Program-made: the position numbers and the translations under genes
From: Macrostomum lignano
Taxonomy: Eukaryota
Reading direction: 5' to 3'
Length of the DNA stretch: 64,000 nucleotides
Assembly: GCA_002269645.1 (NCBI GenBank)
Contig: NIVC01000251.1
Coordinates: 496,001-560,000 of the forward strand
Shown here: positions 16,748 to 54,400 of the stretch, piece by piece
Numbering within the stretch: the first letter of the stretch is position 1
How the letters are laid out: every line of letters starts with the position of its first letter
The notes under the pieces: generated by a model
What the model was told of the DNA's origin: nothing
The model's input: the letters and a program-made list of their open reading frames with translations, nothing else
Database searches by the model: none

Positions 16748-16788
16748 CTCGTACGTAGATCGTTTTTATCAGTCTATCTTGCCAAACT

Positions 16789-21900: not shown

Positions 21901-22430
21901 GACTGCGAGCTATCAAGAAGCGGCCGGTATCCCCCTTTATGCTGGTTCCAGCTGGCTTGCTTGGCGGTAGTCTTCTGCTGCTGGTGGGGTATGCTCCGCG
22001 CAAGTCTAGTCTGCTTCCCCGCAGAGCTAAGGGCACAGAGCTCATGCAGCGCTCCAACCTGCAGAGGTACCCCAGGGGTCTTGTCCTGCGCTGCCATCGG
22101 ACAGTTTAAGGACCATCGGACAGTTTAAGGAGCGCGTGCATCTGTTCCTTCTTCCAAGACTGGCTCGGCGGTTGGCAAATGGAGCAAACACACATGGGAA
22201 GGAATCGGTTTGCGCGCAGTGTTCAGCCTGGCTAACATTAGTCTATGGCCAAAACTTGTGTTGAAATCAACAGGCTCTTATGGATTCTTGTGCAGTCAGC
22301 TTTCATGGGAGAGTCAATTGCTTGTTTGTCTTTTCCTCACTTTTTTTCTCTAACCTTTATGTACATAACACTGGCCTGTTCACACGCGCTCCTTCGAATA
22401 AACTTTTTCTTGACCACATCATGGAGCTGA
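18914..22430 (+). mobile_element. Degenerate DIRS/Ngaro-type tyrosine-recombinase retrotransposon
   Basis: In order: gag-like ORF with a SAP-like motif (LRERLQGLGLPTYGNKGELIERL) and a CCCH-type finger (ICFDFNKEAGCCRRNCRFSHRC); RT (RLIHDCSRP, KVDLREAYR, RLPFG, YLDDF); RNase H (IESDAC, INYKE, YCDNQA, ADAASR); start of a YR integrase (SLLSASYAPSS.., WGMLRAS). There are many frameshifts and stops, YR is truncated near a 19-bp duplication at 22094-22131, and AATAAA is at about 22397. Ends are approximate. Confidence 0.88.
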
Positions 22431-24022
22431 GATCCGCAGCTTTCATTTGAATCAAGTTACAATTGAAACGGACTGAAATTATGTCCGCTAGAAGACATCG
22501 TAGCAAGGGTTCCGGAACTTTTGACGGACAGTATATTTCCTAGATAAGCCACTCAGCGAGTAGCGACCACAAGCATGCCCATAGAGCCTTTGTATTTCTT
22601 AAAATTTTTGCGACCACGGTATCAGGTCAGTAGCTTGTGCGCGTATCAAGGGATTTTTATGGCAAATTAGCTATTTTCAGGAAAATTCTTATTCAAACGA
22701 AACAGTTAAACATGTAAACGAAATGTAAGAAACAATAAACATCAGAAAGTTTAAATTGAGAGTGGGAGCAGGAGAATCGCCTATTGAGAGTGGCCTATCT
22801 AGGGAATAAGATCTATGCGCTCTGTCTGTCTATCTGTCTAGAGTTACTAAACATGAGTCGTCTTAAAAGTCCTTAAAAATTCTAGAAAGAGTCGCTGGAG
22901 TCACTATAATGAGCTGTTTGTAATGGTAGATTATGTAGTAGGTCACGGAGGTAAATAATGGCCGAAACACGAGTGCACATAGTGCGTGAGTGACTTACGG
23001 ACGTTACTGTGAACTCCGAAGAGGCTAGAGCTCTGTTTGGGAGAGAGAAGAAGCATAGAAGGTTTGCCGAGGGCCAAAATTTCAGCAGAGTACGTGGGTC
23101 GAACCATAGACAAAAAGCGAAGAAATGCTTGATATGAAAAGGTTCAAGTAACGTAACTTAAGTTAAGAAATACCAGTCAAGGAGTTCTAACAATAGAACT
23201 CCCTGGCCAGATCATGGTGCTTAATGCGCGTTCTAGGGTTAGAAGTTCGAGGCGAGCGAAGCGAGATCTGATATGAAATCTGAATTGCCTTTTTGTAGCT
23301 TTCTATCGAGCCGCACGCACTGAATGCGGCGCAAGCCTTTGGGGGCGGGGCGAATCCCCGACTCCCCCGCATTTCAACCATAGACAAATTTTCAATAAAG
23401 TTAAGAATCATTAATGCAAAAATAGTATAGGATTACATATTCCTCGGCTACACTTGATGGCCTTCATTTCGGAGCCCATTCAACGGGTCAGCACTGCTGT
23501 CCAGTAGGATTCAGGCTTGGTGCACACAAATTATAGGGATTAGAGAAAGCTAATTAATATAAGAAGAATAAACCAACAAACAACACATTACAACTAATTT
23601 TTAAGCGTCGATAAAAAGAGCATTATCGAATAATGTGTAATAATGTAGTCGCTGTGCACGAATATGTATTTAGACACACGCATGTTTATATATGCATAGA
23701 AGACCAATTTAAGACGCTTGAAAGATTAAAAGAGCTTATATAAAAAAAGATTTACACATACATCAGGCCAATTCAATTAGTTAAATTATCAATCAAAATC
23801 TGAATTAAATAATTAAAACAATATCCAGATAATAATGGTAGGTTTTCAACTACTGAGAAGCGTAAATTTAGCACACCAATTAGAAATAGTGCCTGTATCA
23901 ATAGTCCTAGAATATATAATATATAGCTAAATCAACTGGAATATTATATAGCAATCTATCAAATTTATTGAGGCATCATAATAAGTTTATAAATAAACAT
24001 TAGTTAGTGCTTAGTAACAAAT

Positions 24023-36270: not shown

Positions 36271-38118
36271 ACTTGATGGAGTAGTCCGATCATATATGTC
36301 CTGTCCTGTCAAATCGCATCCTGCCATTCCCCCAGATCCCGGCCGTTGAATACGAATCATGTGCCGGACAATTTGTCGTGTCTGTCCTGCATGGTTAAAT
36401 GGCCCTGCAGTGGACTTTTCGAATAGTCCACCTACTCATGCATAGCGATGCGCCTACTGCGAGTAAAAGTATGTGCTATTTACAAGTAAAGTTTATACTG
36501 ACTTTTCTAAGAAAAGAAAAGGTTGTCTAAAAGTTTATTTTTCGTAGACATCTTTAAGAATTATCCTACCAAAGTTGCCTTTTTTATTATTTTTGCCTAA
36601 TAGACACATTAAAGAAATCTCAATGAAAATTCAATATGACTTTTAGACCAAAATTTTTAGCAGAGTCGTCTGCCGGCCGGGTGCTAGTGAAGATGCTTCG
36701 GTGGCAAAAGTTTTGACGACAGATTGCATGATAGGAGAGTTCTAGATTGAATTGTTATGGCAGACTCTTTATGTATATATCCAGCGATAGATACAAACAC
36801 AACAAACAAAGCTTTGTTTCTTCAAAAAAATTTTCGAAAGTTGTTTCAATAGGAATGAAACCATCTGCCTATACACTGTAGCTATCCTTGTGTCGATAGC
36901 TACAGTGTATAGGCATTTGTTGACGAATGCACCTTAAATTATATAGATTACATGTAGTTCTCCCAGGAGTACAACAACGTACAATAAATGGACATCGTCA
37001 AGTACATTTATATTTGAGCAACTACTTTTACGCATAATTCATAAATTAGGGGGAGCTCAAAACTAAATGATCAAATGGAAAACCCCTACTACAGTCTAGC
37101 GGAAAAACCCGTCTCAAGACCTCATAATCGCACAATCTTAAATTCAATTAGCCCCCTCTTCATTTTATCACAAACCATTATAACTTCACAATCACTCAAA
37201 ATGTTTTTCATGCAAACAGAGAACCTTTTACATGTAAAGTTACATGCATTTATTGTGTATAATATAAATGTCAATTGAGTTTCATTAACGCGACTAAACC
37301 ATCTTCTATAGCATAATCATGCAGTAGCTAAAAATGCATTGATGATTAAATCAAACAAAATTAAATGTAATGCGTAATGCGTTCTACGTCTAGCTTTAAT
37401 TCGCGAGCTTAACCATGCATGCAGAGCAAACAGCAGTGAGCAGGACCAAAATTTGCCACGCCAATTTGAGTCAATATCCATCTAATAATTACCTGTGTTT
37501 ACCAGCTTAGCATAGACGTCAATGTTCACGCTTACAGGTCGTACACTACTACGAGTATATATCAATCAGCCAGCAACCAACTCTGCATCCAATATACTGT
37601 AAATTAATTACCTCGGGCACACGCAAAAGCAGTTTCGAAAATTTTGCTAATGAAAACTAAATTTACAGTATAAACATATATATGTACATGTAATAATACA
37701 TACAAATCAGCCGTTGCATTAGTTAGGTTAACAGGATGTTAGCTATTTGAGCGCGTCAATCAAGCAAAAAACCGCGTCAGCACTAATGATCACTATTTGT
37801 TCTGCAAAAAACCCAGAAAACTTACCGTGTATTCCACACAGGGATATATTCGCCAATGCAAATAGTAGCTCGATCGTATATTGTGGGAAAAATCAAGCCA
37901 ATGTATTTATCTCAGTATCATTTCTGAATCGACTGTCATGGGCAACTAAATTTGAAGGACGCTACATTCGATTTTGTTAGAAATGATCTGGGGGCCGTAG
38001 GGAACGTAAATATTTGGTATACAGTATATAGTATAGCATTTAGTAAGTAGAACGTATATACGTGCAGTTAGCGGATTTAGCATGCTCTACAGCAGACATC
38101 GGCAAACTACCTCCAGGG

Positions 38119-38513
38119 CATGGATGAATGAATAGAATGGATTGCTATTCTGGCTCTGGCTATTTTCGTTTTTGACTCTTTTGCATCCGGTTCCCCCCCG
38201 TGCCTTTTCATTGGGTGATGATTGCCATAGACAATTTTCGGCCTTCGCCCCTTTCTTTCGATGCACAAGCGCTTTCGCTCGTGTTTTGAAATAAAGGGGG
38301 AAGACCTACAAGCACGATTCGAGAGTCGATTCGTCTACAATAAAATCAGTTCTTTGCGCTTGTGCATCGAAAGAAAGGGGCGAAGGCCGAAAATTGTCTA
38401 TGGCAATCATCAACCAATGAAAAGGCACGGGGGGGGGGGAACCGGATGCAAAAGAGTCAAAAACGAAAATAGCCAGAGCCAGAATAGCAATCCATTCTAT
38501 TCATTCATCCATG
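38119..38513. mobile_element. P-element-like palindromic MITE, copy 1 (395 bp, TSD CTCCAGGG)
   Basis: About 155-bp near-perfect TIRs beginning CATGGATGAATGAATAG. 8-bp TSD at 38111-38118 and 38514-38521. Confidence 0.88.
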
Positions 38514-38905
38514 CTCCAGGGCCAGATAGAGAACCTACACATATAGCGCTTGACTGCGGACCAGAGGATGAGGAAAGAAAAGAGAAGAGAGAGAAGATTG
38601 GAGAGAAGGGAAATGAGAAAAGAAAATCTAATCTCAGATATCTCAGGGCCAGATTGCTATTGTGAAGTTTCAAAAACCCGAGTGATAGAAAGGCTTTGCG
38701 AGCCGTGGCCTACGGGCCGGGGTTTCCCGACCCCTGCTCTATAGAGGAATCGAAAATCTGTTCGGAAATTTTCCTGAGGCCTGCCGTGCGATTCGTGTGC
38801 CCTATCAGGGCCAGTGTCGCATGCCTGTGCGTTTGAGTTTAGTTGAGTTGAGTTTGCAGGTAGAATCGAGAAAGTAGAATTCTTTGTAATAAAACTGTCA
38901 AATTA

Positions 38906-39886
38906 CGAGGGGTGTCCGGAAAATAGTGTTACTTTTTACTTGGAGCAGACGGTTGGTAAGTTGCATTGACACAAGTTTGGTGTCGTTTGAAAGCGGCAAG
39001 TTTCTTGTTTAAAATGATTTACATGTAAGCTGCAATAGATTTGGATTGATATTTTAAGAGATATGTGCACTTAAGTAGAGGGAGATTGGTCATAGACTTA
39101 CAAAATCTAGACACAAGCCTTCTGTACTGACGATCCAGCTTCATGTCCTCAGTGAGCCATCAGGGAACCCAACGGGCACTCAGCTTGACATGAATCATCT
39201 TCTGCAGACACTTCTAAACTGTGGACTTCGAGCAATCTGGTCTATCGTCTATTTCGCGGATGCTTTGGTGGCAGTCTTCATCAATCAAGTCGAGAATGGA
39301 TCCGAGAACGAGGCCGCCGCTGGCATGGATCTCGGTCGTCCTGACCTTCAGTCGGTTCAGTTCCAGTTCATGTCAGTTCTTCCACCCCTGATCTCGTTCA
39401 CCCACTGTTCACTGTCATCGTGCCGACGGAATGGTCTCCATGCGCAGTTCAGAGTTGCCATGAATATCAGCTGCTTTGCACCCGGAGCTCCAAAGTGTAA
39501 ATATGGCATGTCGCTTCCCAGTCTGAATGCACGTCCATTTGCCGATTGATGGATCAAAATTTGAGCACAGTGAAGATTTTTCTACACAACTGGTTCAGCC
39601 GCATTCTTTTGAGAAAGCTTTTCACTGTGCCACATTTGACCATAAAACAACTCATACATTAAAAAAATATCGATTGCCATTGAGCAGAAGGCTAATTTTA
39701 GCAGATACGCTTGTATTTGAGCTTCTGTAAGTCTATCACCAATCTCCCTCTACTTAAGTGCACTTATCTCTTAAAATATAAATCCAAATCGATCGCAGCT
39801 TAAGTCATTTTTGAGAAGAAACTTGCCACTTTCAAACAACACCAAACCTCCAAGCAAAAGTAACACTATTTTCCGGACACCCCTCG
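38906..39886 (-). mobile_element. Mariner-family element with internally deleted transposase (981 bp, TA TSD)
   Basis: TA|CGAGGGGTGTCCGGAAAATAGTGTTACTTTT ... AAAAGTAACACTATTTTCCGGACACCCCTCG|TA, with long imperfect TIRs. A minus-strand remnant reads SGRPRS..LIDED..SIREI..SKSTV..KLSARWVP*WLTEDMK. It is inserted just 3' of the stop of channel gene A. Confidence 0.9.
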
Positions 39887-39939
39887 TATAATCAAGAACT
39901 TCGTACTAGCGATGGCATGCATTTAATTCACTGATATTG

Positions 39940-41691
39940 TTAGACTTGCTCGACCACCAAAGTGGCGTCGAAGGTTTCAGCTTTGCAGCCGGAATTCGTA
40001 TTGCCGCGCGTTCCACTTCTGGCCGGATCGTTCTTGTCCTCTTCGTCGTCGCCTGTCCGAGGCGCCACAGCTCCGGTCCCGACGGAACAGCAGCCGAGCA
40101 GGCAGTCGTGCAGCAGCTCGAGCACCTCCAGCACAGTCAGCAGAGAGCAGCCCATGTAGAGGCCCAGAATGCCGCCAGCATCCGACACGAGGTTAGCCAA
40201 CTCGTAGCTGCGCTCGATTGTGACTGTCGGCCCCAAGGATTTTCCGGCTTTGACCTTGATTTGCATCAGCTGGTCCTGCATATAGTTGCTGGCGATCAGA
40301 CTGCGTTCTGAAGTCCTGTTATCAAGAATCTCCGTAATGATAGACTCCAATTCAACATATCCGGGATGCGTTTCGTTAGATAAACGACCTCTATTGACTG
40401 TCATTAGGATGCTCCATAATGATGCGACCTGATTAGAGGAAAAAATTCTAGGCCAGGTACCAGATGAATACGTGAAGGTGTAGCTCCATGTTTCGCAAGG
40501 ACGTCTGTTTTTGCAGTATCTTTGAATTTTCCTCTGATCAAGCGATTCGTAAAAATAGTCATTTTCATTCAGAAATGTTTTATTTCTCTGATAGTTACTT
40601 TTGAATAGTGGTCCATTAGTGTTCAAGCATCCGAGGGCGCTTTCGAATCTTTTGCTTCTCGGCAGCAGGTGGTTCACGCAGCCGCTATGCTTCATCAACA
40701 ACTCGTTTATTCTCTCAGAGCGGCAAAGGTACTGGCTGTACTGGTAAGCCGTCTCGGACCCGTTGTACGGACTAACAATCCTCATGGGCTCGAGATCAGA
40801 GAGGCACTGCATCCCCTTGGACAGTGTCAGCTTCTCCATCTCCAGGTTAATTGTGTACTCTTTTCCAGAGCTCAGCTGCAGAACTGAGTCAGGACTCGGG
40901 TAGTGACCTCGTTTAGCAAAGTACAAGTTGACTCCACTCCAACCCTTCAAATTGATACCCCAGGTAAGATCCCAGGTAAGAAAGTCGAAACCGGATTGCT
41001 TTTCCAAAGGCACCGGAGCGATATCAATCGTCTTGGAAAACTTGATGAAGGTACCATCTACAAACAACATTATTTCCAGATAATTGTTCTCAATGCTCAG
41101 AGCTGCTCTCTGCTCATCTGTGGGCTCGAAGCGGACACAGTTAAGCTCGGACGGGCTGTAGAAGGTGCTGAAGTGAACCTTTTCTCGACCCATTCCATTG
41201 ATTGCGGTTCGCATAACAAGCTGATCGGCTCTGTGACCCAATCTGTCACTGAGCAGCCGATATGGCAAGGTTGCCATCAGAGATTGGGCAAATTTACGAG
41301 AAGCATGTTGATGAGATGGTATGCCAAAGAGTTCATTGGTTTTGTTCACATAGCTGTTGATTTCTGACACTTGTTGTGAGTCCTGCATGTAGGGATAACT
41401 TCCTGACACAATGTTCGTGCTGCAGATGACCAGGTCCGGGAACTCGAACTCCACCGAGTCCTCCTGCAGAGTGGTCGTCTGCGGCTTTTCATGGTACTTG
41501 TTCACAAAGACTTGCACCTGGATGACAAAGATCGTCATGAATGAGGCGAAAACCAGAAGCCAAATTAGTTTGATGTAGATTGGTCGCTGACCAGAGAGTC
41601 TGCTCAAACCGTGAGCAGATGTGCTCGACAGCCAAGCTTGAAAAGGTAGCAGAATTGCTGCCTTGTGGACTGCGGTTGGTTTCTCTGTCAT
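39940..41691 (-). CDS. DEG/ENaC (ASIC/degenerin) family channel subunit, copy A, intronless, 583 aa
   Basis: Pre-TM1 HG motif (STSAHGL), TM1 IWLLVFASFMTIFVIQV, post-TM1 EFPDLVICS, and TM2 LVSDAGGILGLYMGCSLLTVLE with a G-x-S filter. Confidence 0.95.
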   Translation of the reverse strand: MTEKPTAVHKAAILLPFQAWLSSTSAHGLSRLSGQRPIYIKLIWLLVFASFMTIFVIQVQVFVNKYHEKPQTTTLQEDSVEFEFPDLVICSTNIVSGSYPYMQDSQQVSEINSYVNKTNELFGIPSHQHASRKFAQSLMATLPYRLLSDRLGHRADQLVMRTAINGMGREKVHFSTFYSPSELNCVRFEPTDEQRAALSIENNYLEIMLFVDGTFIKFSKTIDIAPVPLEKQSGFDFLTWDLTWGINLKGWSGVNLYFAKRGHYPSPDSVLQLSSGKEYTINLEMEKLTLSKGMQCLSDLEPMRIVSPYNGSETAYQYSQYLCRSERINELLMKHSGCVNHLLPRSKRFESALGCLNTNGPLFKSNYQRNKTFLNENDYFYESLDQRKIQRYCKNRRPCETWSYTFTYSSGTWPRIFSSNQVASLWSILMTVNRGRLSNETHPGYVELESIITEILDNRTSERSLIASNYMQDQLMQIKVKAGKSLGPTVTIERSYELANLVSDAGGILGLYMGCSLLTVLEVLELLHDCLLGCCSVGTGAVAPRTGDDEEDKNDPARSGTRGNTNSGCKAETFDATLVVEQV

Positions 41692-42145
41692 CTTTTTGGG
41701 TCAAGATTCAAAGCCGCATGTATAAGACTGTATTAACTCAACAAGGAATACCGACCTTAGTCCCGTAGGTTCTCTCTTTTCTGACCGCAGTCGTCACCGA
41801 TATCTCAAGAGCGCAGTATGATGAATCTGTCAATCCAGAATTGAAAATGCGGACTTCCCTACATTTACATGTGTATGTAACGTAAATGTTCTGACTGGGA
41901 ATTTAGCTAGAATGTCAGCCATTGGCTGATGTGGCTCTTCAAGTCAACTTGGTCTGTGATTCAGTACAATGGCAGCATTTGTCCGGCAAATTCTACTAGT
42001 ATAACCATTCCGTAATATTCATACTACATGCACATAGTCATATTCAACTGAAAGCAGTAGTATGTAGTGCGCATATTTACGAGCGTATTATTGATTTGTT
42101 AACTAGCAGTAATAGCCCCCCCTCCTTGCGGCGGCAAAAGATGAT

Positions 42146-43772
42146 GGAATAGGACTTTCCTTTGGCATCTCAGCATTCCTTTTTTAACCTTGGCAGCCTG
42201 GACAGGCCTGCAATGACATTATTTAGCTTAGCAATATGAACTTTATGAAGCTATAAACAGTCCAGAGTTGGTACTAAAGACTGTGCATCAGTTCCAGGGG
42301 GTTGGTAGTCGCCTATTGCGCTTTAGATCTTTAGGCCCCAATCCTGCTGAACTCCTAAGAAAAGCCAAAGATGTTGTGGGTAAATTTGCGAATTTTACCT
42401 CGCGAAGAAACTATAACCACCCGAGTATCCTTCCAAATATACTTTTCTAGCATTCGTTAAGTTACCTAAAACTCGGAATTGGCAGCAGTTATAGTATAAA
42501 TCCGCCCATCTTATTTGACAGAGTAGCAGCCGTGTTAGAAACAAGGGAGCACGACAAGGGAGCTGGAGCTTCTTTATAAGAAGTCCATGGTCGGGTTGCA
42601 GTCCTTTGAAGCAGGGAGGCTGTCTTTGAGCAATCCATCCATCAAAACTGGTTGGGGTTTCCAGTGGACGTCAGGCTGACGTGGAAGCGCCGACGCAGAT
42701 TAGAGGCGCTGGGCTCGCAATCAGAGAGGATGTTAAGGGTAATAAAATCGGCTAAGACCTTGTCTCTGAAGTTGAGATAAATATACCAGCGTATGACAAA
42801 AGCTATCGTCAATCATGAGGTTTGTCAAGTTTAAAATGGACACCGGCTTCGAGTAGTCGACGAGTCGTCTTAAAAGCCTTGTAGCGTACTTTAATAACTT
42901 TCTCGAAATTTCGTTAGATTTCTAAAGTCAAAAAGATTTATATTTCCAGAAACTTATTCAAGTTAGCATCTTATCTATAACATACGCATATAAATAGTAA
43001 ATAATTATTTATTACTTAACTGTTAATATTCTACTCGTATTTGCGTAACGTATATAATTAAGTGTTTAATCGCTTTGTTAAGATGCGCTCAATCTTTCTA
43101 GAAATTTCCGGAAGACAGTTACAAATCTATAAATATACGGCGACGGCAGTGACACGAATCACTCTCCCCTTGTTTTCTCTTCGATCTGATTTCCGTTGAT
43201 AAACTACTAAATGAACCACCGCCTTGCTCTCATTCAATAACCAACAAAGACATCTACAGCCTCGCCGAGGACGAATTGATATCCTGTTTAAAATACCTTG
43301 AAGTAGGCCTTCATCTTAAGTCCTCAGCGGACACTGTCCGACCAAGGTCCCTCCTTCCGATAGTCCTAAGACTAGCAACAGGGCTGATACTCTCTATATT
43401 GAATGAGAGGGGTACTCTATATTGAATCTGCTCACTGTTTCCACTTCCGAGCTGTAAAGTGTTTTAAATAGGCCTGTAGTATTTTAAAAGGCCTAGTTTC
43501 TCGGCGAAATTCTTTTCAAGCAAAGATCTCGCATTGCAGTAAGGACCCTCGGACTTGCCTGTCTGGTCTCGCACCTTTTCTTCAAGTGGTCTAAAGCGCA
43601 ATGGACGGCTCCCATCACCCCTGGAACTGATGCACAGTCTTTAGTACCAACTCTGGACTGTTTATAGCTTCATAAAGTTCATATTGCTGAGCTAAATAAT
43701 GTCATTGCAAGCCTGTCCAGGCTGCTAAGGTTCAAAAAGGAATGCTGAGATGCCAAAAGAAAGTTCTATTCC
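42146..43772. mobile_element. Non-coding 1.6-kb element with about 155-bp TIRs (GGAATAG..CTATTCC), no TSD found
   Basis: 42146-42300 is the reverse complement of 43617-43772 with few mismatches. No transposase was recognised inside. Confidence 0.75.
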
Positions 43773-43888
43773 TGGCATTCTTCTCGAATCGTTTGTTAAA
43801 CTATTTTTTCAATGTTTTTCCCACTTTCTCCACCTGAGAAGCTTATTTTAGCATTTTTTGACATCCCCAAGCTATTAAAACAGTAAAA

Positions 43889-44095
43889 TTAACAACTTTG
43901 TTTTTTGCACTTCCAGTCCGGAACAACGACCATCATGCACTTTGTTGAACCACGCTCCGCCATGCCGAGCACCCACTGACCAGGTTGGAAGGCACCCTGA
44001 TGAAACTTACAGTGCATGAAGTAGGACTTGTCGACCTCCACATCAACATCAGGGCCACCAAGCTGGACCAAGGTGGTCCTCCAGCACCTGGGCAC
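43889..44095 (-). pseudogene. Merlin/ISXO2-like (IS1595 family) transposase fragment
   Basis: VEVDKSYF..KFHQG..GQWVLGMAERGSTKCMMVVVPD resembles the VEIDES..KY.RG..QWVFG.IER..KC..V.VPDR motif. Only a short fragment is present. Confidence 0.7.
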
Positions 44096-46682
44096 ACACG
44101 TCGGGAATAAATTTGTGTAGTGAGTTCATACACAGACAATTTCACGAGTGGCGAAGCCACGAGTGACTAAAATTTATCATTGTCTATGACAAAACAATAT
44201 ACACAAACACATTGTCTCATGAATGTATTTTTAGAAGCCTAAAATAATGATTCCTAAGCGTGGAATAATGAGCGTACAGCATGACACAATGCATTGTCTG
44301 TAGGATCGTCAATGATTATTTATCCATTAACACTCAAAAATAGTGCAGTAGAAACATTGCTATGCGCTTTCGTCTATGGCATTAGTTGGCGCCGGAAGAA
44401 GTCGAGGAGGGGGGAGAGTGAGAATGGGGGTGTGGGGGCGAAGCCCCCACTTTCTAAAATGAAATATAAATAAATTTTAGTCTATGGCCCACATCGACAT
44501 TAATATGCACTGTAGTTTTTTGATCCTATAAAGAGGGAGACAGAAGGTTTAAGAGAGCTGAGTAGAAAGACAGCAGATTTGATTTCTTGCATCTTTCAGT
44601 TACGCAAACAAAATCGCCATGGCTGACGCAGAGCCAACTACAGTGGCAGAAGTTCTGCCTCCTCTATTTAACTACGGAGCTATGCCGAATGGGGAGATTT
44701 CAGGAGTAACATCCGGCGAGTTCGACTTGATTTGCACGTCATTGGATCATGCCCAAGGTCATTAGACCGTCGAGATGCAGCGAACCGCTATAGATTCTCC
44801 GAGAAAAGCTGCAAGAGACTTTCGCTTTCTTCTTGAGTTTATGAAGAACGTCAGTGAGAAAGCAGGCCTTACTAAGGTGTACACCGACCGCTGCATATGG
44901 TAGGTAGTTTGACCTGTACTTTTTCCCACCATATTCATGTGTCTCTGTGAAAACATTTGAATCTAGACAAATCAGTTGCCAAATTTTCCTAAACTGCAGA
45001 GTAACTAGAGCGTGCCACCTGGATACCTGTGGCCAGACTATCCAGGAAATCATGCTCATCACTGGGCGAAAGTGTGAGCGGACTGTTAAGCGCTACTTAT
45101 CGAGGCGACGGGATCGCAGTTGTATAGGGCATCTCTGGCTGTGGATCAGGCCGAAACTAATGTCATTAATGTCATTAATTAACTGATTAACATACGATTT
45201 CTTTGTTGAACAGTTTTTGATGTTTTTCTAACATAAAAAAATAAATTTTTTTCTTTGTTATTGTTTAAATTGCCGTTGCGTGTTAATGTCCAAAATGACA
45301 TTAACACGTATCCCACGCGCGTGTTATTTTCACCAAAAAAGCATAGCAATGTTCATACTCTAGAGTGCTCATACTTCCCCTCTATCTAACCAACTCATCC
45401 CTTTGGACCATAGACATTCTTATTTGATCCAGCGTGCAAGAATGCTTTGGAAGTCGCCATATGCGTGCAGAAATGCAAGTTTCTATGGTAAAAGCACCTT
45501 GAATTTACATGTGCACTCCGTGCAGAAATGTCTATCGTGCAAGAATGTAACGCGCAATGTTTCTATATTTAGCATAACAGCCATAGACTACAAGCATAAT
45601 CTTCTTTCCATCGTGCAAGAATGTTCAGACTAGCTCGCGCATATTTTGTCTATGGTTCAAGTCTAACTCCACACCCCCAGCTCCACCCTTGTCTACTTTA
45701 GCCACACATGTTGGATCAAATAAGAACGGGAATCAAGCACTTTGACTTGTCCGTCTATGGTAAAAACCCTCGTGCGCTACGCGCACTCGTGTTTCAGCCA
45801 TTGACGCACTCGTCAGCGTGCTAGATTCCTCCATTGTCGGCTGATTTTCCATGCAAGAATGGCATTCTTGCACTCTTTTGCGTGCAGGAATGGATGTCTA
45901 TGGTAAAATCTCACTGAAAAAGCATTAGGCGCAGAAATGCATTCCTGCACGGTTTTGTGCATTCCTGCACGATGAATCATCCGACAATGGAATTCCTTCA
46001 CGTTCACTCGTGCGTGAAGGACATCGTGCACTCGTGTTTCAGCCATTGACGCACTCGTCAGCGTGCTAGATTCCTCCAGTCCCAAGCATCAGTACCACGT
46101 CAGACAACACGATTCCCGCGTTTTCGCACCAATCTGAAATAAAAAACTTCGAAACTTCAAATTGTTAGGAATCGTTAGGCATTGCTAGACGACAAAAGTG
46201 TCATCATCCGTTGCCGCCGCAAGGAAGGGGCTATTACTGCTAGTTAGCAAAGCAACAATAAATATGCGCACCACATACTACTGTTTTCAGCTGAATATGA
46301 ATATGTCGTATGAATATGAATATGAATATGAATATGAATATTTCGTTACCGAATTGTTATAGAATTTGCCGGACAAATGATGCCATTGCACTGACTTGCT
46401 GAACAAATTGACTTTGAGAGCCACACCAGCCAATTGCTGACACTCTAGATGCCCAGCCAGAATATTTAGGTTCCATTCACACCTGAAATTTGGGAAGTCG
46501 GTAATTTTTCAATTCTGGATTGACAGACTCATCATACTGCGCTCTTTGGATATCGGTGACTTAAACTGCGGTCAGAAAAGCGAGTACCTAGCTACGGGAC
46601 TAAGGTCGCTATTCTTAGTTGCATTATTTTCGAAACGGTACATATATATACATGCATTCGCCCTGAATTCAGACACCCAAAC

Positions 46683-48410
46683 ATGCCTGACGAGAAACCA
46701 ACCGCAGTCCACAAGGCAGCAATTCTGCTACCTGTTCAAGCTTGGCTGTCGAGCACATCTGCTCACGGTTTGAGCAGACTCTCTGGTCAGCGACCAATCT
46801 ACATCAAACTAATTTGGCTTCTGGTTTTCGCCTCATTCATGACGATCTTTGTCATCCAGGTGCAAGTCTTTGTGAACAAGTACCATGAAAAGCCGCAGAC
46901 GACTACCCTACAGGAGGACTCGGTGGAGTTCGAGTTCCCGGACCTGGTCATCTGCAGCACGAACATTGTGTCAGGAAGTTATCCCTACTTGCTGGACTCA
47001 CAACAAGTGTCAGAAATCAACAGCTATGTGAATAAAACCAATAAACTTTTTGACACACCCAGTCGCCCATTTGCTTCACGTAAATTTGCCCAATCTCTGA
47101 TGGCGACCCTGCCTTATCGGCTGCTCAGTGACAATTTAGGCCACAGAGCCGATCAACTTGTTCTGCGAAACGCAATCAATGGAATGGGTCGAGAAAAGGT
47201 TCACTTCAGCACCTTCTACAGCCCGTCCGAGCTTAACTGTGTCCGCTTCGAGCCCACAGATGAGCAGAGAGCAGCTCTGAGCATTGAGAACAATTATCTG
47301 GAAATTATGTTGTTCTTGGATGGTACCTTCATCAAGTTTTCCAAGAAGATTGATATCGCTCCGGTGCCTTTGGAAAAGCAATCCGGTTTCGACTTTCTTA
47401 CCTGGGATCTTACCTGGGGTATCAATTTGAAGGGTTGGAGTGGAGTCAACTTGTACTTTGCTAAACGAGGTCACTACCCGAGTCCTGACTCTGTTCTGCA
47501 GCTGAGCTCTGGAAAAGTGTACACAATTAACCTGGAGATGGAGAAGCTGACACTTTCCAAGGGGATGCAGTGCCTCTCTGATCCCAAGCCCCTGAGGATT
47601 GTAAGTCCGTACAACGGGTCCGAGACGGCTTACCAGTACAGCCAGTACCTTTGCCGCTCTGAGAGAATAAACGAGTTGTTGATGAAGAAAAGCGGCTGCG
47701 TGAACCACCTGCTTCCGAGGAGCAAAAGATTCGAAAGCGCCCTCGGATGCTTGAACACTAATGGACCACTATTCAAAAGTAACTATCAGAAATATAATGC
47801 TCTATTGAACAGAAATGACCACTTTTACGGATCGCTTGACCAAAAGAAAATTCAAAGATACTGCAAAAATCGACGTCCTTGCGAAACATTTAGCTACACC
47901 CTCACGCATTCGTCTAGCACCTGGCCCAGGTTTTACTCGTCTAATCAAGTCACGTTACTAAGGAACCTTTTAAGGATAGTCAGAAAAGGTCGTAAACCTA
48001 AAGAAACGCATCCCGGATACGTTGACTTGGCGTCTATCCTTATGGAGATGCTAGACAACATGACCACAGAACGCAGTCTAATGGGCAGCAACTATATGCA
48101 GGACCAGCTGATGCGAATCAAAGTCAAAGCCGGAAAATCCTTTGGACCGACAGTCACAATCCAGCGCAGCTACGAGTTGGCTAACCTCGTGTCGGATGCT
48201 GGCGGCATTCTGGGCCTCTACATGGGCTGCTCTCTGCTGACTGTGCTGGAGGTGCTCGAGCTGCTGCACGACTGCCTGCTCGGCTACTGTTCCGTCTGGA
48301 CCGGAGCCGTGGCGCCTCGGACAGGCGACGACGAAGAGGACAAGAACGATGCGGCCGGAAGGGGGACGCGCGGCAATACGAATGCCATTTTGGTGGTCGA
48401 GCAAGTCTAA
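46683..48410 (+). CDS. DEG/ENaC family channel subunit, copy B, intronless, 575 aa
   Basis: Same signature motifs as copy A and a close paralog of it in inverted orientation. Confidence 0.95.
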   Translation: MPDEKPTAVHKAAILLPVQAWLSSTSAHGLSRLSGQRPIYIKLIWLLVFASFMTIFVIQVQVFVNKYHEKPQTTTLQEDSVEFEFPDLVICSTNIVSGSYPYLLDSQQVSEINSYVNKTNKLFDTPSRPFASRKFAQSLMATLPYRLLSDNLGHRADQLVLRNAINGMGREKVHFSTFYSPSELNCVRFEPTDEQRAALSIENNYLEIMLFLDGTFIKFSKKIDIAPVPLEKQSGFDFLTWDLTWGINLKGWSGVNLYFAKRGHYPSPDSVLQLSSGKVYTINLEMEKLTLSKGMQCLSDPKPLRIVSPYNGSETAYQYSQYLCRSERINELLMKKSGCVNHLLPRSKRFESALGCLNTNGPLFKSNYQKYNALLNRNDHFYGSLDQKKIQRYCKNRRPCETFSYTLTHSSSTWPRFYSSNQVTLLRNLLRIVRKGRKPKETHPGYVDLASILMEMLDNMTTERSLMGSNYMQDQLMRIKVKAGKSFGPTVTIQRSYELANLVSDAGGILGLYMGCSLLTVLEVLELLHDCLLGYCSVWTGAVAPRTGDDEEDKNDAAGRGTRGNTNAILVVEQV

Positions 48411-50247
48411 CAAAATCAGTGAATTACATGCATGCCATCGCTATAGTCTTGACTATTTTGTCGATCAATACGACAGCTTATTTACTAAGAATTCTATTTT
48501 CTCTATACTACAGTATATATTGTTTACAAACTCGCAAAGCATCTCTATCCGGCAATCTGGCCCGCTCAAGGTTTGTATCTCTTCTCAGCTCTCTTCTCTC
48601 TCTTCTCTTTTCTCTCCTCTTCTCTCCATCTTCTGCTCCGTTGTCTCTTCTCTTCTTCTCTGTGCCGCAGCCATGCGCTGGGTTCCCTATCTGACCTTTG
48701 AGGTATATTATATTTACATTGTCAAACGTATCCCTGAGGTGAATATATGGTTACTTTGTGTTTTAAGGACAAATATAGATTGATTGACGCGCTCAGATAG
48801 CATCATGTTAACCCCTAAAACGCAAAAATGGAATACAATTAAGATGTGTGTGCACTGTAAATTGATTTTCCATTACCAACATTTACGAAATTGCTGTATG
48901 TGTGCCTGTGTGTAATTCATTTATATTTGATGCTGAGTTAACTGCTGCATGCTAGCTGATCAATATCTGCGTGTACTGCAAATTTTACATTCATATAGCT
49001 ACTGCAAATTAAATATAGTATGGTCTTTAACCGCATGTATGACATATATAAGTATCGTACGCGAACATGCTGAAGTATACTAAGTATCGAATTTCAAGCT
49101 ACTTGCAATGTTTGCATCAGACCAACGAGTGTGGCAAATGTTGGTCCTGCTTACATGTATTTCTGTTTGCCGATGCACGGTAGCTAGCTCACAACTTAAT
49201 AGCATACTGTAGTAATTCAATCAATAGACATGGATAATAAATTTATGCTTTCAATTTAACGTAATTTGTTTGGTCAATGAATGCATTATTAGTTAATGTA
49301 TGCTATGTATGCTATAGAAATGTTAGTCGCTAAGCAGTAATGTAAATGGCATTAAGTTATAACTAATCGTACAATGCAGAGCGTTTGTTAAGAGTGCCTG
49401 CTTTTGTCAGCGTCCTCACTCTATGCTGGCTAGTATTAGTAGTAGGAAGAAACTCTTAATGTTTTTTGAAATTTGCAATCTATTGATTATCATATATTTG
49501 TTCTAAGCTAGTCCATGCCCTGCTCGGCCACTAACAATTGGCAGATTGGTTGTCATGCCATTCGCATCACACGACGTTATTTGTAATGTTAGCTTATATT
49601 TGTTAGCTCGAATGGCAAAGTTATAAAGTTAAGTTATGAATTCTAATAGCGGTAGGGTTCCATAGAGAATATGTCAATGTCAAGAGCTGGTCCAAGTAAA
49701 TTGAAGACTAAATAAATCTTAGAAAAAATTAATCCGACGATAAAGGTCCTGTACGATCCTCCAAACTCTTACGCCTAGACCGCGAACAAGCACACAGATG
49801 GGGAACACGACTTTAATAAATATTTAATTTGATCACCAAAAATTACGACACATAAGAAATCACATAGAAACTAAAAATAAGTACAAGTAACGACACTGTC
49901 ACAAGGGCCTCCTTCCTTACTCCATGGCAACCGTGTCTAGCGTCCTAAAATCTAAATTCTTTTGCTTTATCGTGCAGGTACCGGAGAGCAACCCAATTGA
50001 CTCTACAACACTCGACCAGTTCCTCCGTGTTACCACATGCGAGCTTCTGTCTCCGCTACCAAAGAAATGTCGCTGCAGGAAGTAACGGCGAACTTCCTTC
50101 CAGAGCTTGCAATTGTCTTTTGCTATGGCCTAGTATACGGCCTGATTTGGCCTAATGGGCGAGGCATCTTACCGCTACCTCCGTGCAGCAAAGTCAAGTA
50201 CATGTAGATGTAAGTCAGCTTGCTGATGGTAATTCCAGACTCAAATG

Positions 50248-50637
50248 CATGGATGAATGAATAGAATGGATTGCTATTCTGGCTCTGGCTATTTTCGTTT
50301 TTGACTCTTTTGCATCCGGTTCCCCCCCGTGCCTTTTCATTGGTTGATGATTGCCATAGACAATTTTCGGCCTTCGCCGCTTTCTTTCGATGCACAAGCG
50401 CTTTCGCTCGTGTTTTGAAATAAAGGGGGAAGACCTACGAGCGCTCGATATTCTCTGCAAGTAACTGACATTCTCAGTTCTTTTCGTTTGTGCATCGAAA
50501 GAAAGGGGCGAAGGCCGAAAATTGTCTATGGCAATCATCAACCAATGAAAAGGCACGGGGGGGAACCGGATGCAAAAGAGTCAAAAACGAAAATAGCCAG
50601 AGCCAGAATAGCAATCCATTCTATTCATTCATCCATG
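50248..50637. mobile_element. P-element-like palindromic MITE, copy 2 (390 bp, TSD CTCAAATG)
   Basis: Same TIRs as 38119-38513. TSD at 50240-50247 and 50638-50645. Confidence 0.88.
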
Positions 50638-51497
50638 CTCAAATGTCCTTGGCTCTGTAATCAGACAGGACTTTCTTAACACCCCCCCCCCCACCAACTT
50701 GCCAGATGTGGCAGCCAACGAACGGCTTGAGTCTACTTGTTGCTCAAGCGAGTTCCTCAGCGTCGTCTCAGCGTTATACGACAGCAGGAAGGTCTCGAAC
50801 ACCGCCTGGAATAACAGCAATTTTTTTAAGCTTTCTTCGGCAGCTACTTCTTTCTCGTATTTGTCCGTATCTTGGATGCCTCACAAGAAAAGCATAATTT
50901 GCCAGCTGCCGAAAAAATCTATTGCCGAGATAAATGCTGAAGCAATTAGAGTCTTGCTGGAAAGAGCCAAGGAGACAGTAGTTTTCGAATTGTTATAATT
51001 GGCACATTTAATTTTAATTGCTATTTAGACACTTGTGTCGATTTCAAGCAAAGAAGTCACCCAACACTAGACCGATGTCGCAGGCCAATCTCGGGGCGGC
51101 GACCCATGAGTTTTTCTATTTAGGCAAGGACGCTACAGAACCCAGGTAACTTTGGACAACCACTGCAAAGTTGTGCCGGCGCGAACTTACAGCAAAATAT
51201 TAAACTATCTAGTGTGAACTCAAAACAAAATAATAAAAAATATATTTTATTGGGCAGCTACTAAAAATATAGTTGTGCATTCAATTTTATATACAAATGT
51301 GTGTAGGCTTTGATTGATGTCAAGATCTTTCAGTTCTGAGTGAGCATCGCGCTCAATATTGCAAGCTACATATTAAATACACACCATGAGTGATAAAACT
51401 AAAGCTAAGTATATTTAAACGTGTAAAATTTTCAAGCATAATCGTGAAAATTAGAAATGTCAACGCAAAAATCCAAACAATGCAATGCTACACACAG

Positions 51498-54400
51498 TCA
51501 AACGCTACTGCAGTCAAATCTGATATCACTGAGGTTTGCAGGAAACTCTGCATTGGTATAATGCGTCATTTCGGCCACTGTTGCAGTCTCGTTTAAACCC
51601 GTGCTCAACTCTGAGCAACAACTGCTGCGTCCTCCGTTTATTACTGGCGAATTTTTGTTATCAAGCAGCTTGCTGCAACACCAGAAGCAGCAGCTGTATC
51701 GGCTACTGTCGCTCGATTCACCTGTCGATCTCGAACTGGATGGCAACCGATGTCTCCTAGGCTGATTGCGCCTCGGATGATGGTGGAACCTTCTAATTGT
51801 AGACTGCCTGTGCAAATAAGGCCTTCTACGGTTGTCACCGGCGGCTGGCAGTACCAAAGACTGAGTCCTCTTGTCAAACAGACTCTCCCCAATATCGTGC
51901 TCAACTAGATCGGCGCCCAACTCTTCGTGCTCCCGCGAGACGCGCAATCCGACGGTGAGGTCGATCAGCTTCAGCAGGACAAGCGATGTGACCGCCGACC
52001 AGGCCACGATTGCGACGACTGCGGCCAACTGAATGCCGAGCAGACGGAATCCGCCTCCCTGATGAAAGGTGCAAGTAATGCAGGCTGTTGTTGTTTTTGG
52101 TAAATAACACTAGTTTTGAGCCAGATAAACAAATTCAACCGATTTTTATCAATTATATAATCCATCAAAACAATATTAGCGTCCATTAGACCAACATTAG
52201 CATCCATTACACCAACATTAGCATCCATTACACCAACATTAGCACCCATTACACCAACATTAGCATCCATTACACCAACATTAGCATCCATTACACCAAC
52301 ATTACTGTCCATTACATCAACATTAGCATCCATTACACCAACATTAGCATCCATTACACCAACATTAGCATCCATTACACCAACATTAGCGGTCATTACA
52401 CCAACATTAGCACCCATTACACCAACATTAGCATCCATTACATCAACATTAGCATCCATTACATCAACATTAGCATCCATTACACCAACATTAGCATCCA
52501 TTTCACCAACATTAGAGTCTATTACACCAACATTAGAGTCTATTACACCAACATTAGAGTCTATTACACCAACATTAGCGGTCATTACACCAATATTTCT
52601 AAAGTTATAAAGTTCAATCTTGACCTCTTTGATAGATCTACATGTTGGTGTAAGAGTCATAATATTTTTTTCACTTGAATTCATCCATCTATAAGAAAGT
52701 CCACAGTCACCTTTAGACAGTCTGTGAAAAAAGCTTGAAAGTCCTAAGATAAACAGCCAGTTTTCCAAAGAAAACGACGAAGTTTACCAGTTCAAAGCCG
52801 GAAATCTCTTTCTTAGTAAACTGCTACATTCTCTTTAAAACGCAACTTTGAAGTTGTTATTTTGTTCTATAAAGTTCAAAAAGTGAAATAACTCTAAGGG
52901 TAAGATATCTTAGCATCCAGGGTATGATGAAACGATTCCCTGGTGACGGACAGACTATTGTCAATTCATATTCTTCAAAAGCACTCTATGCAGAATATGA
53001 ATTAGTTTGAATCAAGGTTAAAAAATCAAATAGAAGAAGGGTTCTGGAATTTAAATTAGCCGCTTCAGATAGAAATAAAATCATTATTAGCAGAAATACA
53101 ATAAAAAGGATGGGTTTAGGTTGCATGAAAAGGGGACCAGTTAACATACAGTAAGGGAGAGAAGGGGAGAGAGAAGAGATAGGTTAAAGGGCAAGAGGGA
53201 GAGGCAGGGTGAGAGGGAGAGAGAAGTCAAGAGGAGGAAAGATTGGGAGAGAGAGAGAGGTTGAGAGGGAGAGAGAAGTCAAGAGGAGGAAAGATTAGGA
53301 GAGAGAGGGGATGAGAGGGAGAGAGAGGGTGAGAGGGAGAGAGAGGGTGAGAGGGAGAGAGAGGGTGAGAGGGAGAGAGAGGGTGAGAGGGAGAGAGAGG
53401 GTGAGAGGGAGAGAGAGGGTGAGAGGGAGAGAGAGAGGGTGAGAGGGAGAGAGAGGTTGAGAGGGAGAGAGAGGTTGAAAGGGAGAGAGAGGTTGAGAGG
53501 GAGAGAGAGGGTGAGAGGGAGAGAGAGAGGGTGAGAGGGAGAGGGAGAGGTTGAGAGGGAGAGAGAGGGTGAGAGGGAGAGAGAGAGGGGTGCGATGGAG
53601 AGAGAAGTTAAGAGGAGGAGAGATTGGGAGAGAGAGGGTGAGAGGGAGAGAGAGAGAGGGTGAGAGGTAGAGAGAGAGGGTGAGAGGGAGAGAGAGGGTG
53701 AGAGGGAGAGAGAGGGTGAGAGGGAGAGAGAGAGGGTGAGAGGGAGAGAGAGGTTGAGAGGGAGAGAGAGGTTGAAAGGGAGAGAGAGGTTGAGAGGGAG
53801 AGAGAGGGTGAGAGGGAGAGAGAGAGGGTGAGAGGGAGAGGGAGAGGTTGAGAGGGAGAGAGAGGGTGAGAGGGAGAGAGAGAGAGGTTGAGAGGGAGAG
53901 AGAGAGGGGTGCGATGGAGAGAGAAGTTAAGAGGAGGAGAGATTGGGAGAGAGAGGGTGAGAGGGAGAGAGAGAGAGGGTGAGAGGTAGAGAGAGAGGGT
54001 GAGAGGGAGAGAGAGAGGGTGAGAGGAGGAGAGATTGGGAGAGAGAGGGTGAGAGGGAGAGAGAGAGGGTAAGAGGAGGAGAGATTGGGAGAGAGAGGGA
54101 GAGAGGGAGAGAGAGAAGTTAAGAGGAGAGATTGGCAGGGAGAGTGAGGGGTAAAAAGGAGAGTGACAGAGGACGACAAAGAGAATGCAGATTTAAACCA
54201 TGTAAGCCCAGTTCCCAGAATTCGAATTAAAAAAGTTTTTTTATTTTTTTAAATTTTTATAAATAAAATTTTTATAATTAATATTTATAAAATTTGAAAT
54301 TTAAATTTAAAATTAATAATTAATTAATAATAAGCAGCTGACCAACCAACGGCTCACATAGAACAGTCCGCTGTGATTGGTTGGCACGCCGAGTACATTC

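Follow-up and report, generated by a model that had tools for sequence, protein, structure and literature searches.

Interlocus gene conversion is seen, for example, in the primate globin and RH genes. Caenorhabditis paralogues are an example of interlocus conversion with mosaic concerted evolution (PMC3966223): near-identical tracts alternate there with old divergence at silent sites. Among DEG/ENaC channels of solved structure, the FaNaCs (PDB 7yvb from Aplysia; 8on7–8ona from Malacoceros) have a peptide pocket composed of α1–α3, the β6–β7 loop, and α6 (PMC11993918). Here, we compare these systems with a pair of DEG/ENaC genes, A and B, found in a 64-kb window (the whole stretch of Macrostomum lignano DNA that was analyzed).

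Gene A (39940–41691, minus strand) and gene B (46683–48410, plus strand; stop codons included) are intact, intronless DEG/ENaC open reading frames (ORFs) of 583 and 575 amino acids, respectively, with 508 of 581 positions identical (87%) and a single 9-aa gap in the BLASTP alignment. Both proteins cover positions 2–455 of the 455 positions of the Pfam ASC profile (PF00858), with E-values of 3.4e-47 for A and 4.4e-47 for B, and scores of 162 and 161.6 bits against a curated cut-off of 23.6. The HG gating motif is at residue 27 in A and 28 in B; the post-TM1 motif FPDLVIC, a variant of the FPxxTxCN-like motif with V replacing T, at 84 and 85; and the GCS triplet of the selectivity filter (G-x-S type, TM2) at 514 and 515. 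Eight ectodomain cysteines are retained in A and B alike; C296, C323, and C399 are invariant across the family alignment. The AlphaFold2 model of A (pLDDT 79.7, pTM 0.76) places helices at 38–68 and 498–538, that is, two TM helices around a large ectodomain that contains cysteines and folds into palm, finger, thumb, and knuckle, the last being extended and multi-helix. A and B are thus predicted to be full-length DEG/ENaC channel subunits in divergent orientation, and the head-to-head pair on inverted arms, as given in the preliminary description, is borne out by the ORFs, the Pfam ASC matches, and the inverted homology. Since both ORFs are intact and are under purifying selection (see below), each presumably yields a functional subunit of a trimeric Na+ channel of FaNaC/ASIC-like type, ligand-gated or mechanically gated.

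FaNaC is the best profile match of the pair (E = 1.3e-119, family profile) and the best fold match (Foldseek E = 7e-25, TM-score 0.55–0.67); the best 50 Foldseek matches of the A model in the PDB are all FaNaC, ASIC, or ENaC, with FaNaC and ASIC at the top. The likeness includes two TM helices and a finger/thumb/palm/knuckle architecture with an extended multi-helix knuckle; in addition, the diverged islands of the pair, described below, overlap the α1–α3 and α6 elements of the peptide pocket. However, the pair and the FaNaC structures share only 17–18% identity, and the pair has only eight ectodomain cysteines, GCS in the filter where FaNaC has GAS, and a 40-residue loop at 211–252, modeled in A with low confidence. 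By profile and fold, FaNaC is the closest solved structure; we do not assign the pair to the FaNaC subfamily. ASIC1 (2qts, 6ave) shares the superfamily and the fold, and aligns well in TM2 and pre-TM2 (E ~6e-11, single sequence); however, similarity is weak outside TM2 and the N-terminal region, and membership in the ASIC clade is unsupported by the tests run. A word-indexed protein search with the pair gives no match at E ≤ 1e-10, while an exhaustive HMMER search of 1.8 billion proteins yields a best identity of ~32%, the top seven matches all coming from Macrostomum lignano. The nearest sequences are uncharacterized DEG/ENaC proteins of the same species (26–32% identity). The pair probably belongs to an uncharacterized, fast-evolving flatworm DEG/ENaC clade, with the peptide-gated FaNaCs as its nearest solved relatives. 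No third DEG/ENaC copy, fragment, or pseudogene was found across the window.

The inverted arms extend from ~37290 to 42146 (A) and from 46202 to ~49330 (B). Strong inverted homology is seen between A 42146–39907 and B 46202–48443 (88.8% over 2202 columns) and includes 455–481 bp 5′ of each ATG. The upstream copy of A, with the putative promoter and 5′UTR (41692–42146, minus strand), is in a high-divergence state, with ~17% substitutions plus indels relative to the upstream copy of B (46202–46682, plus strand); the latter carries a (TGAATA)n microsatellite at 46292–46341, and a 55-nt block upstream of A (41793–41847) is 95% identical to B 46506–46560. Overall, 16.7% of upstream sites differ, in addition to indels (K 0.19). 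As each gene has its own duplicated upstream copy of 455–480 bp, the shared bidirectional control region suggested earlier is unnecessary.

The 3′ flanks are diverged but matching: that of A (37290–39906, minus strand) is interrupted by two mobile-element insertions, and that of B occupies 48444–49330 (plus strand). Aligned globally with MAFFT, the 3′ flanks are too diverged to be informative; hence, chained local alignments with shuffle controls were used. Once the two A-arm insertions are removed, the flanks form a colinear chain of matches at 68–77% identity, the best of which score 80 and 75 bits, compared to a maximum of 31 bits in 100 dinucleotide shuffles. Half of the flank can be aligned; over this half, the arms differ at 20.5% of sites, and 60 of ~530 columns are gaps (K 0.24). 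The other half is unalignable between A and B. The outer arms initially drawn to 36950 and 49400 are also real, but weak, with 3′ homology traced to ~37290 and ~49330. Past the inner breakpoints (A from 43773 onward against B below 46201), no homology is found (best E-value 0.15). A retrocopy origin was also considered and rejected, since the duplicated unit takes in ~0.9 kb of 3′ flank and a poly(A) tract is absent at its end.

Arm A carries two mobile elements in its 3′ flank. One of them, TE1 (38904–39888; 985 bp), is non-autonomous, has terminal inverted repeats with perfect 32-nt termini, and is flanked by TA on both sides; it is present only in this flank, and once it is excised, the flank aligns to B 48411–48511 over 101 nt without a break. 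A foldback MITE-like element (38118–38516), with a 7-bp target duplication CTCCAGG, is absent from arm B; its second copy (50247–50640) falls outside the colinear order of the arms. Another element with terminal inverted repeats, 1.6 kb long, lies among other repeats in the ~4 kb that separate the upstream copies. This element, TE2 (42146–43772; 1627 bp), has 183-nt terminal inverted repeats (42146–42327/43772–43590, 93%); its left end lies at most 1 nt from the inner breakpoint of arm A, and A/B homology is absent beyond it. It is a possibility that TE2, abutting the breakpoint, generated the inverted duplication. The unique, repeat-rich spacer between the arms (43773–46201) is enriched in the motif GTCTATGG and has no Pfam-recognizable ORF; two spacer ORFs looked like transposase or tyrosine-recombinase fragments, a reading that was dropped, as they have no significant Pfam match. 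An Rfam scan of the whole window gives zero families at threshold.

Divergence between A and B is strongly heterogeneous along the arms. A two-state HMM (p_low = 0.029, p_high = 0.187) outperforms a one-state model (2ΔlogL = 113) and produces six segments alternating high, low, high, low, high, low, with B-side boundaries at 47032/47033, 47170/47171, 47787/47788, and 48089/48090. The first putative conversion tract (A 41345–41682, minus strand; B 46695–47032, plus strand) covers the N-terminus, TM1, and β1–β2, with 6 differences per 338 nt and dS = 0.051; it is followed by the first candidate unconverted island (A 41207–41344; B 47033–47170) in finger α1–α3, with 24 differences per 138 nt. The second tract (A 40590–41206; B 47171–47787) comprises the β-ball, palm, and thumb α4, with 16 differences per 617 nt and dS = 0.065; the second island (A 40288–40589; B 47788–48089) comprises thumb α5, β10, and the knuckle helices, with 65 differences per 302 nt. 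The third tract (A 39907–40287; B 48090–48443; 354 nt) covers β11–β12, TM2, and the C-terminal tail, and holds a 27-nt in-frame indel (A 39967–39993). The tracts differ at 1.8–4.2% of sites (2.8% overall), and the islands at 17–22%, about the divergence level of the flanks. Low-divergence tracts end at the edges of the coding sequence, the third running 33 nt beyond the stop codon.

Several tests agree with this mosaic. Synonymous divergence is dS = 0.391 in the divergent blocks (38/124.7 synonymous sites) vs. 0.054 elsewhere (13.5/260.2; Fisher p = 1e-10), and the binned dispersion test for synonymous differences gives p = 0.001. Identical runs of 123–169 nt occur in the low-divergence parts; the longest one (169 nt) has p = 0.0003, and the sum-of-squares run test yields p = 5e-5. 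GC3 is 0.65 in the tracts and 0.47–0.49 in the islands (Fisher p = 5e-5 for A, 2e-4 for B) and is negatively correlated with divergence (Spearman −0.55, p = 0.015), a trend absent from codon positions 1 and 2. The GC3 rise could be a signature of GC-biased conversion, or could be explained by codon usage in conserved domains. At 0.39, the island dS is above K both upstream (0.19) and in the part of the 3′ flank that aligns (0.24); partial constraint or earlier conversion of the flanks may account for this, or else the Nei–Gojobori method may overestimate dS on ~125 sites. As the searches gave no relative above ~32% identity, conversion is inferred here from two sequences, by heterogeneity along A/B rather than by phylogenetic incongruence.

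The counts made by eye in the preliminary description agree well with the alignment. Residues ~18–101, reported as identical, show no difference in columns 19–102, and TM2 is identical in A and B; 7 differences are observed in the mid-ectodomain (columns 166–368; ~7 by eye), 12 in the block after YPY (columns 103–165; ~11 by eye), and 39 in the block before TM2 (columns 369–495; ~39 by eye), including the charge shift WSILMTVNRGRLSNE vs. RNLLRIVRKGRKPKE. The 9-aa C-terminal indel corresponds to the 27-nt indel of the third tract, and VEQV ends both proteins. In the A model, the two blocks map, as had been proposed, to the finger and to the thumb, β10, and knuckle. Gene conversion on the inverted repeat, also proposed there, is supported by the mosaic dS, the flanks diverged to the level of the blocks, and the raised GC3 in the tracts.

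The same description had suggested that ligand-facing surfaces diversify. As stated, this is not supported, since the blocks show no surplus of amino acid change relative to silent change: dN is 0.143 in the divergent blocks and 0.020 elsewhere, with dN/dS of 0.37 in each partition, and non-synonymous and synonymous differences stand in equal proportion inside and outside (Fisher p = 0.68). Of the two patterns sought along the gene, non-uniform synonymous divergence is thus present, while an amino acid excess in the blocks is absent. Taken separately, block 1 (columns 103–165) has dS = 0.306 and dN = 0.111 (ratio 0.36), and block 2 (columns 369–495) has dS = 0.442 and dN = 0.159 (ratio 0.36); non-synonymous changes are below the neutral expectation in both (p = 0.024 and p = 0.0007, respectively). 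A search for positive selection in the blocks finds dN/dS neither above 1 nor above that of the rest of the gene; the hottest 18 codons, with a ratio of ~1.1, are indistinguishable from neutrality (p = 0.58), and no window is significantly above 1. Polarized against the distant family alignment, B is closer in 28 differences and A in 16, with 17 ties, which is not significant and is unreliable at ~20% identity. Both copies are under purifying selection, and the patchiness gives no sign of adaptive protein change, although equal dN/dS would still be compatible with a few adaptive substitutions in the islands.

We consider the locus, with a probability of about 0.8, to be an old inverted duplication partly homogenized by interlocus gene conversion, with purifying selection acting on both copies. 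An inverted copy of an ancestral intronless DEG/ENaC gene would have arisen, carrying with it ~0.46 kb from upstream and ~0.9 kb from downstream of the gene; the non-coding flanks would then have diverged freely, and mobile elements would have entered arm A. Recent intrachromosomal conversion between the loci would have re-homogenized coding stretches of 338, 617, and 354 nt, while the islands of 138 and 302 nt would have escaped it, retaining the divergence accumulated since duplication. The duplication itself is considered old because both flanks of the coding region are highly diverged, with many indels and arm-specific mobile-element insertions; neutral divergence is estimated at ~0.25–0.4 substitutions per site. 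Patchy amino acid differences would follow from blocks of unequal age, with the protein evolving at one rate throughout (dN/dS 0.37). The tracts may stop at the coding edges because only selectively conserved sequence remained similar enough for heteroduplex formation. The islands may persist by chance and mismatch-dependent anti-recombination, or by selection against conversion of the diverged finger and knuckle surfaces. Coding-limited tracts, more diverged flanks, and GC-enriched converted tracts are shared with known systems of concerted evolution; the pair is not unusual among these, tracts of 0.3–0.6 kb and inverted orientation being typical, and novelty is confined to the gene family and the host lineage.

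The role of selection in keeping the islands apart is a more tentative matter. Conversion over diverged ligand or gating surfaces (finger α1–α3, knuckle α6) might have been purged, yielding different specificity or gating, or a two-pocket heterotrimer; we regard this as possible, with odds clearly below even. Such selection would add to conversion of an old duplication rather than exclude it, and the pattern expected from it is that of a neutral mosaic. The positions of the islands are suggestive: the first coincides with the finger helices at 105–151 (105–122, 132–141, 144–151), and the second with thumb α5, β10, and the knuckle helices at 419–474, while α1–α3, the β6–β7 loop, and α6 make up the pocket of FaNaC, the closest solved structure (PMC11993918). 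Nine of the 16 residues of helix α6 differ between A and B, with the net charge of a 15-residue stretch changing from +1 to +6; two extra N-glycosylation sequons of A, N370 and N439, lie in the second island; and purifying selection within the islands of both copies would mean that the differences are being maintained. On the other hand, dN/dS in the islands equals that elsewhere, the islands constitute 33% of the protein, so that overlap with both pocket elements has a chance of ~1 in 10, and the family is in any case most variable in the finger and knuckle. Functional divergence of A and B is plausible by analogy. The more specific scheme, in which the islands are held by selection as a FaNaC-like pocket (finger α1–α3 plus knuckle α6, +5 charge), so that one channel would be split into two subunits of differing peptide or ligand specificity, with pore and assembly interfaces kept interchangeable by conversion, is somewhat more doubtful still.

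Explanations that dispense with an old, partly converted duplication fare considerably worse. A young duplication (~3–5% divergence), with the blocks pasted into one copy from a distant third paralogue by ectopic conversion, would likewise yield a mosaic with raised dS and dN in the blocks, and the island dS nominally exceeds the flank K; but the diverged flanks with indels and arm-specific insertions speak for an old duplication, and the donor has no trace in the window or, above ~32% identity, among the 1.8 billion proteins, making this origin improbable. Slightly less probable again is a single age without conversion, with the sevenfold variation at silent sites caused by the local mutation rate or by selection on synonymous sites (codon bias, RNA structure). 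The GC3 difference (0.65 vs. 0.48) could indeed reflect selection on codon usage; still, dS jumps sevenfold within a few hundred bases, the boundaries are sharp, and the identical runs are long, all of which far exceeds what codon bias usually does, and the low-divergence state reaches 33 nt of non-coding sequence past the stop codon. Flatworm genomes of this group are rich in repeats and partly polyploid, so the arms might be allelic haplotypes or a chimeric palindromic read misjoined in the assembly; this we find hardly credible, as 4 kb of unique sequence separates the arms, the three mobile-element insertions, the 27-nt in-frame indel, and the 17–22% divergence of islands and flanks exceed the allelic level, and the divergence of the arms is unlike a perfect palindrome artifact.

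The A/B pair leaves the current understanding unchallenged and, as an old duplication partly homogenized by conversion, would be a clean small-scale case of concerted evolution. Amino acid patchiness here would stem from segments of unequal age rather than from adaptation; by-eye comparison of paralogues often falls into this trap. If A and B differ in ligand or gating, the candidates are already narrowed to ~50 residues in two structural elements, which would make mapping with chimeras easy; and if the pocket is indeed maintained by selection, the pair would amount to a natural "domain-swap" experiment, indicating which residues determine the ligand in an uncharacterized DEG/ENaC clade.

The gene pair consists of two long ORFs in divergent orientation, A (39940–41691, minus strand, 583 aa) and B (46683–48410, plus strand, 575 aa), with an ATG-to-ATG distance of 4991 bp; both ORFs are uninterrupted, hence the genes appear intronless in their coding part. 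Each protein covers positions 2–455 of 455 in the Pfam profile ASC (amiloride-sensitive sodium channel, PF00858; E ~4e-47), and both retain the N-terminal HG motif, the post-TM1 motif FPDLVIC, the GCS triplet at the selectivity-filter position of TM2, and eight ectodomain cysteines. Both proteins come out as members of the DEG/ENaC superfamily in every sequence and fold test. Their identity is 508/581 (87%, BLASTP), with one 9-residue gap near the C-terminus. Against a library of 1.84 billion proteins, A has Macrostomum lignano DEG/ENaC proteins as its seven top matches (26–32% identity); the pair is a member of a fast-evolving lineage-specific clade. The C-termini of A (39940–39966) and B (48384–48410) both read LVVEQV, despite the neighbouring 9-aa indel; an E-x-V terminus is compatible with the class III PDZ-ligand consensus, and the shared end hints at a conserved scaffolding interaction.

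Self-BLAST reveals a single strong inverted match (A 39994–42146 vs. B 48383–46202, 88.8% over 2202 columns), and a short extension takes the strong homology to A 39907 and B 48443. The match spans upstream sequence, so each gene has its own copy of it (~455–480 bp). Past the stop codon, homology between the arms, i.e., the inverted stretches carrying A and B, seems to end after 33 nt, because two insertions break arm A: a 985-bp element (38904–39888), bordered by TA, whose 32-nt terminal inverted repeats are perfect, and an internally palindromic, foldback MITE-like element of ~400 bp (38118–38516) with a 7-bp target duplication, CTCCAGG. In silico removal of both yields a continuous 101-nt alignment with B 48411–48511 and, beyond it, a colinear chain of matches (68–77% identity) out to A ~37290 and B ~49330; the best 3′ flank matches score 80 and 75 bits, and none of 100 dinucleotide shuffles exceeded 31 bits. 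Therefore, the arm limits in the preliminary description (36950–42146 and 46200–49400) are essentially right. The duplicated unit is a complete gene in an old inverted duplication. A second foldback copy (50247–50640), 93% identical to the first and with its own 7-bp target duplication, CTCAAAT, places one copy on either side of the gene pair; the two are not colinear with the arms, hence they are independent insertions. A haplotype or assembly artefact is in practice excluded: the spacer is unique, insertions are arm-specific, the 27-nt indel keeps the reading frame, and islands and flanks are 17–22% diverged.

On the inner side, the homology of arm A ends at most 1 nt from the left end of a 1627-bp element (42146–43772) with 183-nt terminal inverted repeats (93% identical), no long ORF, and no evident target-site duplication; no A/B homology resumes on its far side. 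This element may have helped to create the inverted duplication; alternatively, sequence next to it may have been deleted later. The ~4 kb separating the upstream copies contains this 1.6-kb element and repeat-rich sequence with no recognisable gene. A 55-nt block (41793–41847/46506–46560), ~100–150 bp before each ATG, is 95% identical within upstream copies that are otherwise ~83% identical, and could be a conserved promoter or 5′UTR element, or a small conversion tract. As proximal upstream sequence, including this block, is duplicated at each gene, the shared bidirectional control region proposed earlier is unneeded; co-regulation via the duplicated promoters is plausible. The octamer GTCTATGG is present in 15 copies across the window vs. 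1.3 expected (0/100 shuffles reached 15): at 22241–23385, at 33940, within the foldback elements (four copies), and in the spacer (44372–45903; seven copies, often close to a GTGCAAGAATG-like motif). A mobile-element family may carry it as a subterminal repeat motif.

Elsewhere in the window, an ammonium-transporter exon (57416–57973, minus strand; Pfam Ammonium_transp, E = 1e-51) is 85% identical to an M. lignano Amt, the next best match being 68%; it is directly adjoined by a 2.1-kb tandem array with a 22-nt step (57990–60086). Further long minisatellite arrays lie at 13448–14446, 15673–16804 (with a 39-nt period and copies 98–99% identical at 15782–16747), 25094–26578, 52160–52597, 53295–54179, and 55131–56122; these arrays give rise to spurious long ORFs on either strand and to a pronounced GC skew (0.42–0.59 at 52–56 kb). 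A 636-aa ORF (9033–10943, minus strand), with a weak, sub-threshold DUF4218 match (E = 0.009), is probably a mobile-element transposase. The GC-rich stretch 19727–22128 (53–56% vs. ~42% in the window), whose two ORFs (219 and 337 aa) have no Pfam match, may be a mobile-element remnant.

Divergence between A and B is patchy. TM2 and alignment columns 19–102 are identical and columns 166–368 hold 7 amino-acid differences, while columns 103–165 and 369–495, the two blocks defined on such differences, hold 12 and 39; checked by alignment columns, the earlier manual counts are accurate. Nei–Gojobori estimates are dS 0.147 and dN 0.059 (dN/dS 0.40) for the whole gene, 0.391 and 0.143 (0.37) for the blocks combined, and 0.054 and 0.020 (0.37) outside them. 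Synonymous differences are 7.7-fold denser in the blocks (odds ratio; Fisher p = 1e-10), a test independent of block choice, since the blocks were set by amino-acid differences. The balance of non-synonymous and synonymous changes is no different in the blocks and in the rest (Fisher p = 0.68), and the blocks hold significantly fewer non-synonymous changes than expected under neutrality (p = 0.024 for block 1 and 0.0007 for block 2). At the hottest 18 codons (helix α6 and the following loop), 14 non-synonymous and 4 synonymous changes give dN/dS = 1.1, which is not distinguishable from neutrality (p = 0.58). Both genes are intact and under purifying selection; the comparison of dN/dS between the blocks and the rest lends no support to the adaptive reading of the preliminary description, diversification of ligand-facing surfaces.

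A two-state HMM over 2193 ungapped arm columns prefers two divergence classes, 2.9% and 18.7% (2ΔlogL = 113). The upstream segment (A 42146–41683; 0.167 of sites differ) is in the high state, as are two coding islands (41344–41207, 0.174; 40589–40288, 0.215), and these alternate with three low-state tracts (41682–41345, 0.018; 41206–40590, 0.026; 40287–39907, 0.042). The second island starts at 47788 in B, in agreement with the 47790 described previously. Uniform divergence would rarely produce identical runs as long as the longest ones here (169, 144, 135, and 123 nt; p = 0.0003, and p = 5e-5 by the sum-of-squares test).

Between the upstream copies, 16.7% of sites differ and indels are numerous. 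Of the 3′ flank, half can be aligned between the arms (20.5% of sites differing, 60 gap columns out of ~530) and the rest cannot. Together with the three mobile-element insertions by which the arms differ, this indicates an old duplication, roughly of the age that the islands' divergence implies. Of the two states, the low-divergence one in the coding tracts is derived: three tracts, limited to coding sequence, are young, and the two islands are old. A young duplication with imported patches is argued against by the old, diverged flanks; the 64-kb window holds no third DEG/ENaC copy. The alternation of low-dS tracts with old islands, between old flanks, supports the proposed gene conversion on an inverted repeat, and we put the probability that a conversion mosaic explains the A/B pattern at roughly 0.8. 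GC3 is 0.65 in the low tracts vs. 0.47–0.49 in the islands of both genes (Fisher p = 5e-5 and 2e-4) and, along the gene, declines as divergence rises (Spearman −0.55, p = 0.015); GC at the first two codon positions shows no such correlation. GC-biased gene conversion would be expected to leave this signature, although codon usage could contribute.

The young tracts would have arisen by non-reciprocal interlocus conversion between the inverted arms, and they probably stop at coding-sequence edges because only sequence kept similar by purifying selection stays a recombination substrate. The islands may survive by chance, aided by mismatch-dependent heteroduplex suppression at high divergence, or else because conversion across them is deleterious. 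Active maintenance of the islands by selection is compatible with the conversion mosaic, and we regard it as rather unlikely.

For A, AlphaFold2 modelling from an alignment that included 41 distant relatives (mean pLDDT 79.7, pTM 0.76) places TM1 at residues 38–68, the finger helices at 99–158, the thumb helices at 320–336 and 363–394, β10 at 400–412, three knuckle helices at 419–474, β11–β12 at 475–494, and TM2 at 498–538. The model's top PDB fold matches are Aplysia and Malacoceros FaNaC, then ASIC1, ASIC5, and ENaC, and the alignment profile matches FaNaC with E = 1e-119; A and B are left outside FaNaC and ASIC, because identity is only 17–18%. Island 1 encodes finger helices α1–α3 and their loops; island 2, thumb helix α5, β10, and the knuckle helices. 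In α6, a knuckle helix (residues 419–434), 9/16 residues differ, the net charge of a 15-residue stretch shifts from +1 to +6 between the copies, and N-glycosylation sequons N370 and N439 are present in A but not in B. In FaNaC structures, finger α1–α3, the β6–β7 loop, and knuckle α6 build the pocket for the neuropeptide (PMC11993918), hence ligand-facing islands are reasonable by analogy; the overlap itself is only suggestive, because the islands span one-third of the protein, and the family is least conserved in finger and knuckle. The identical TM1, palm, and TM2 regions would be compatible with heterotrimer formation.

For inverted or tandem paralogues, mosaic concerted evolution that includes coding-limited conversion and GC enrichment is well documented, e.g., in Caenorhabditis (PMC3966223), and the A/B pair is a tidy further case; its interest would rise if the islands functionally determine ligand specificity.
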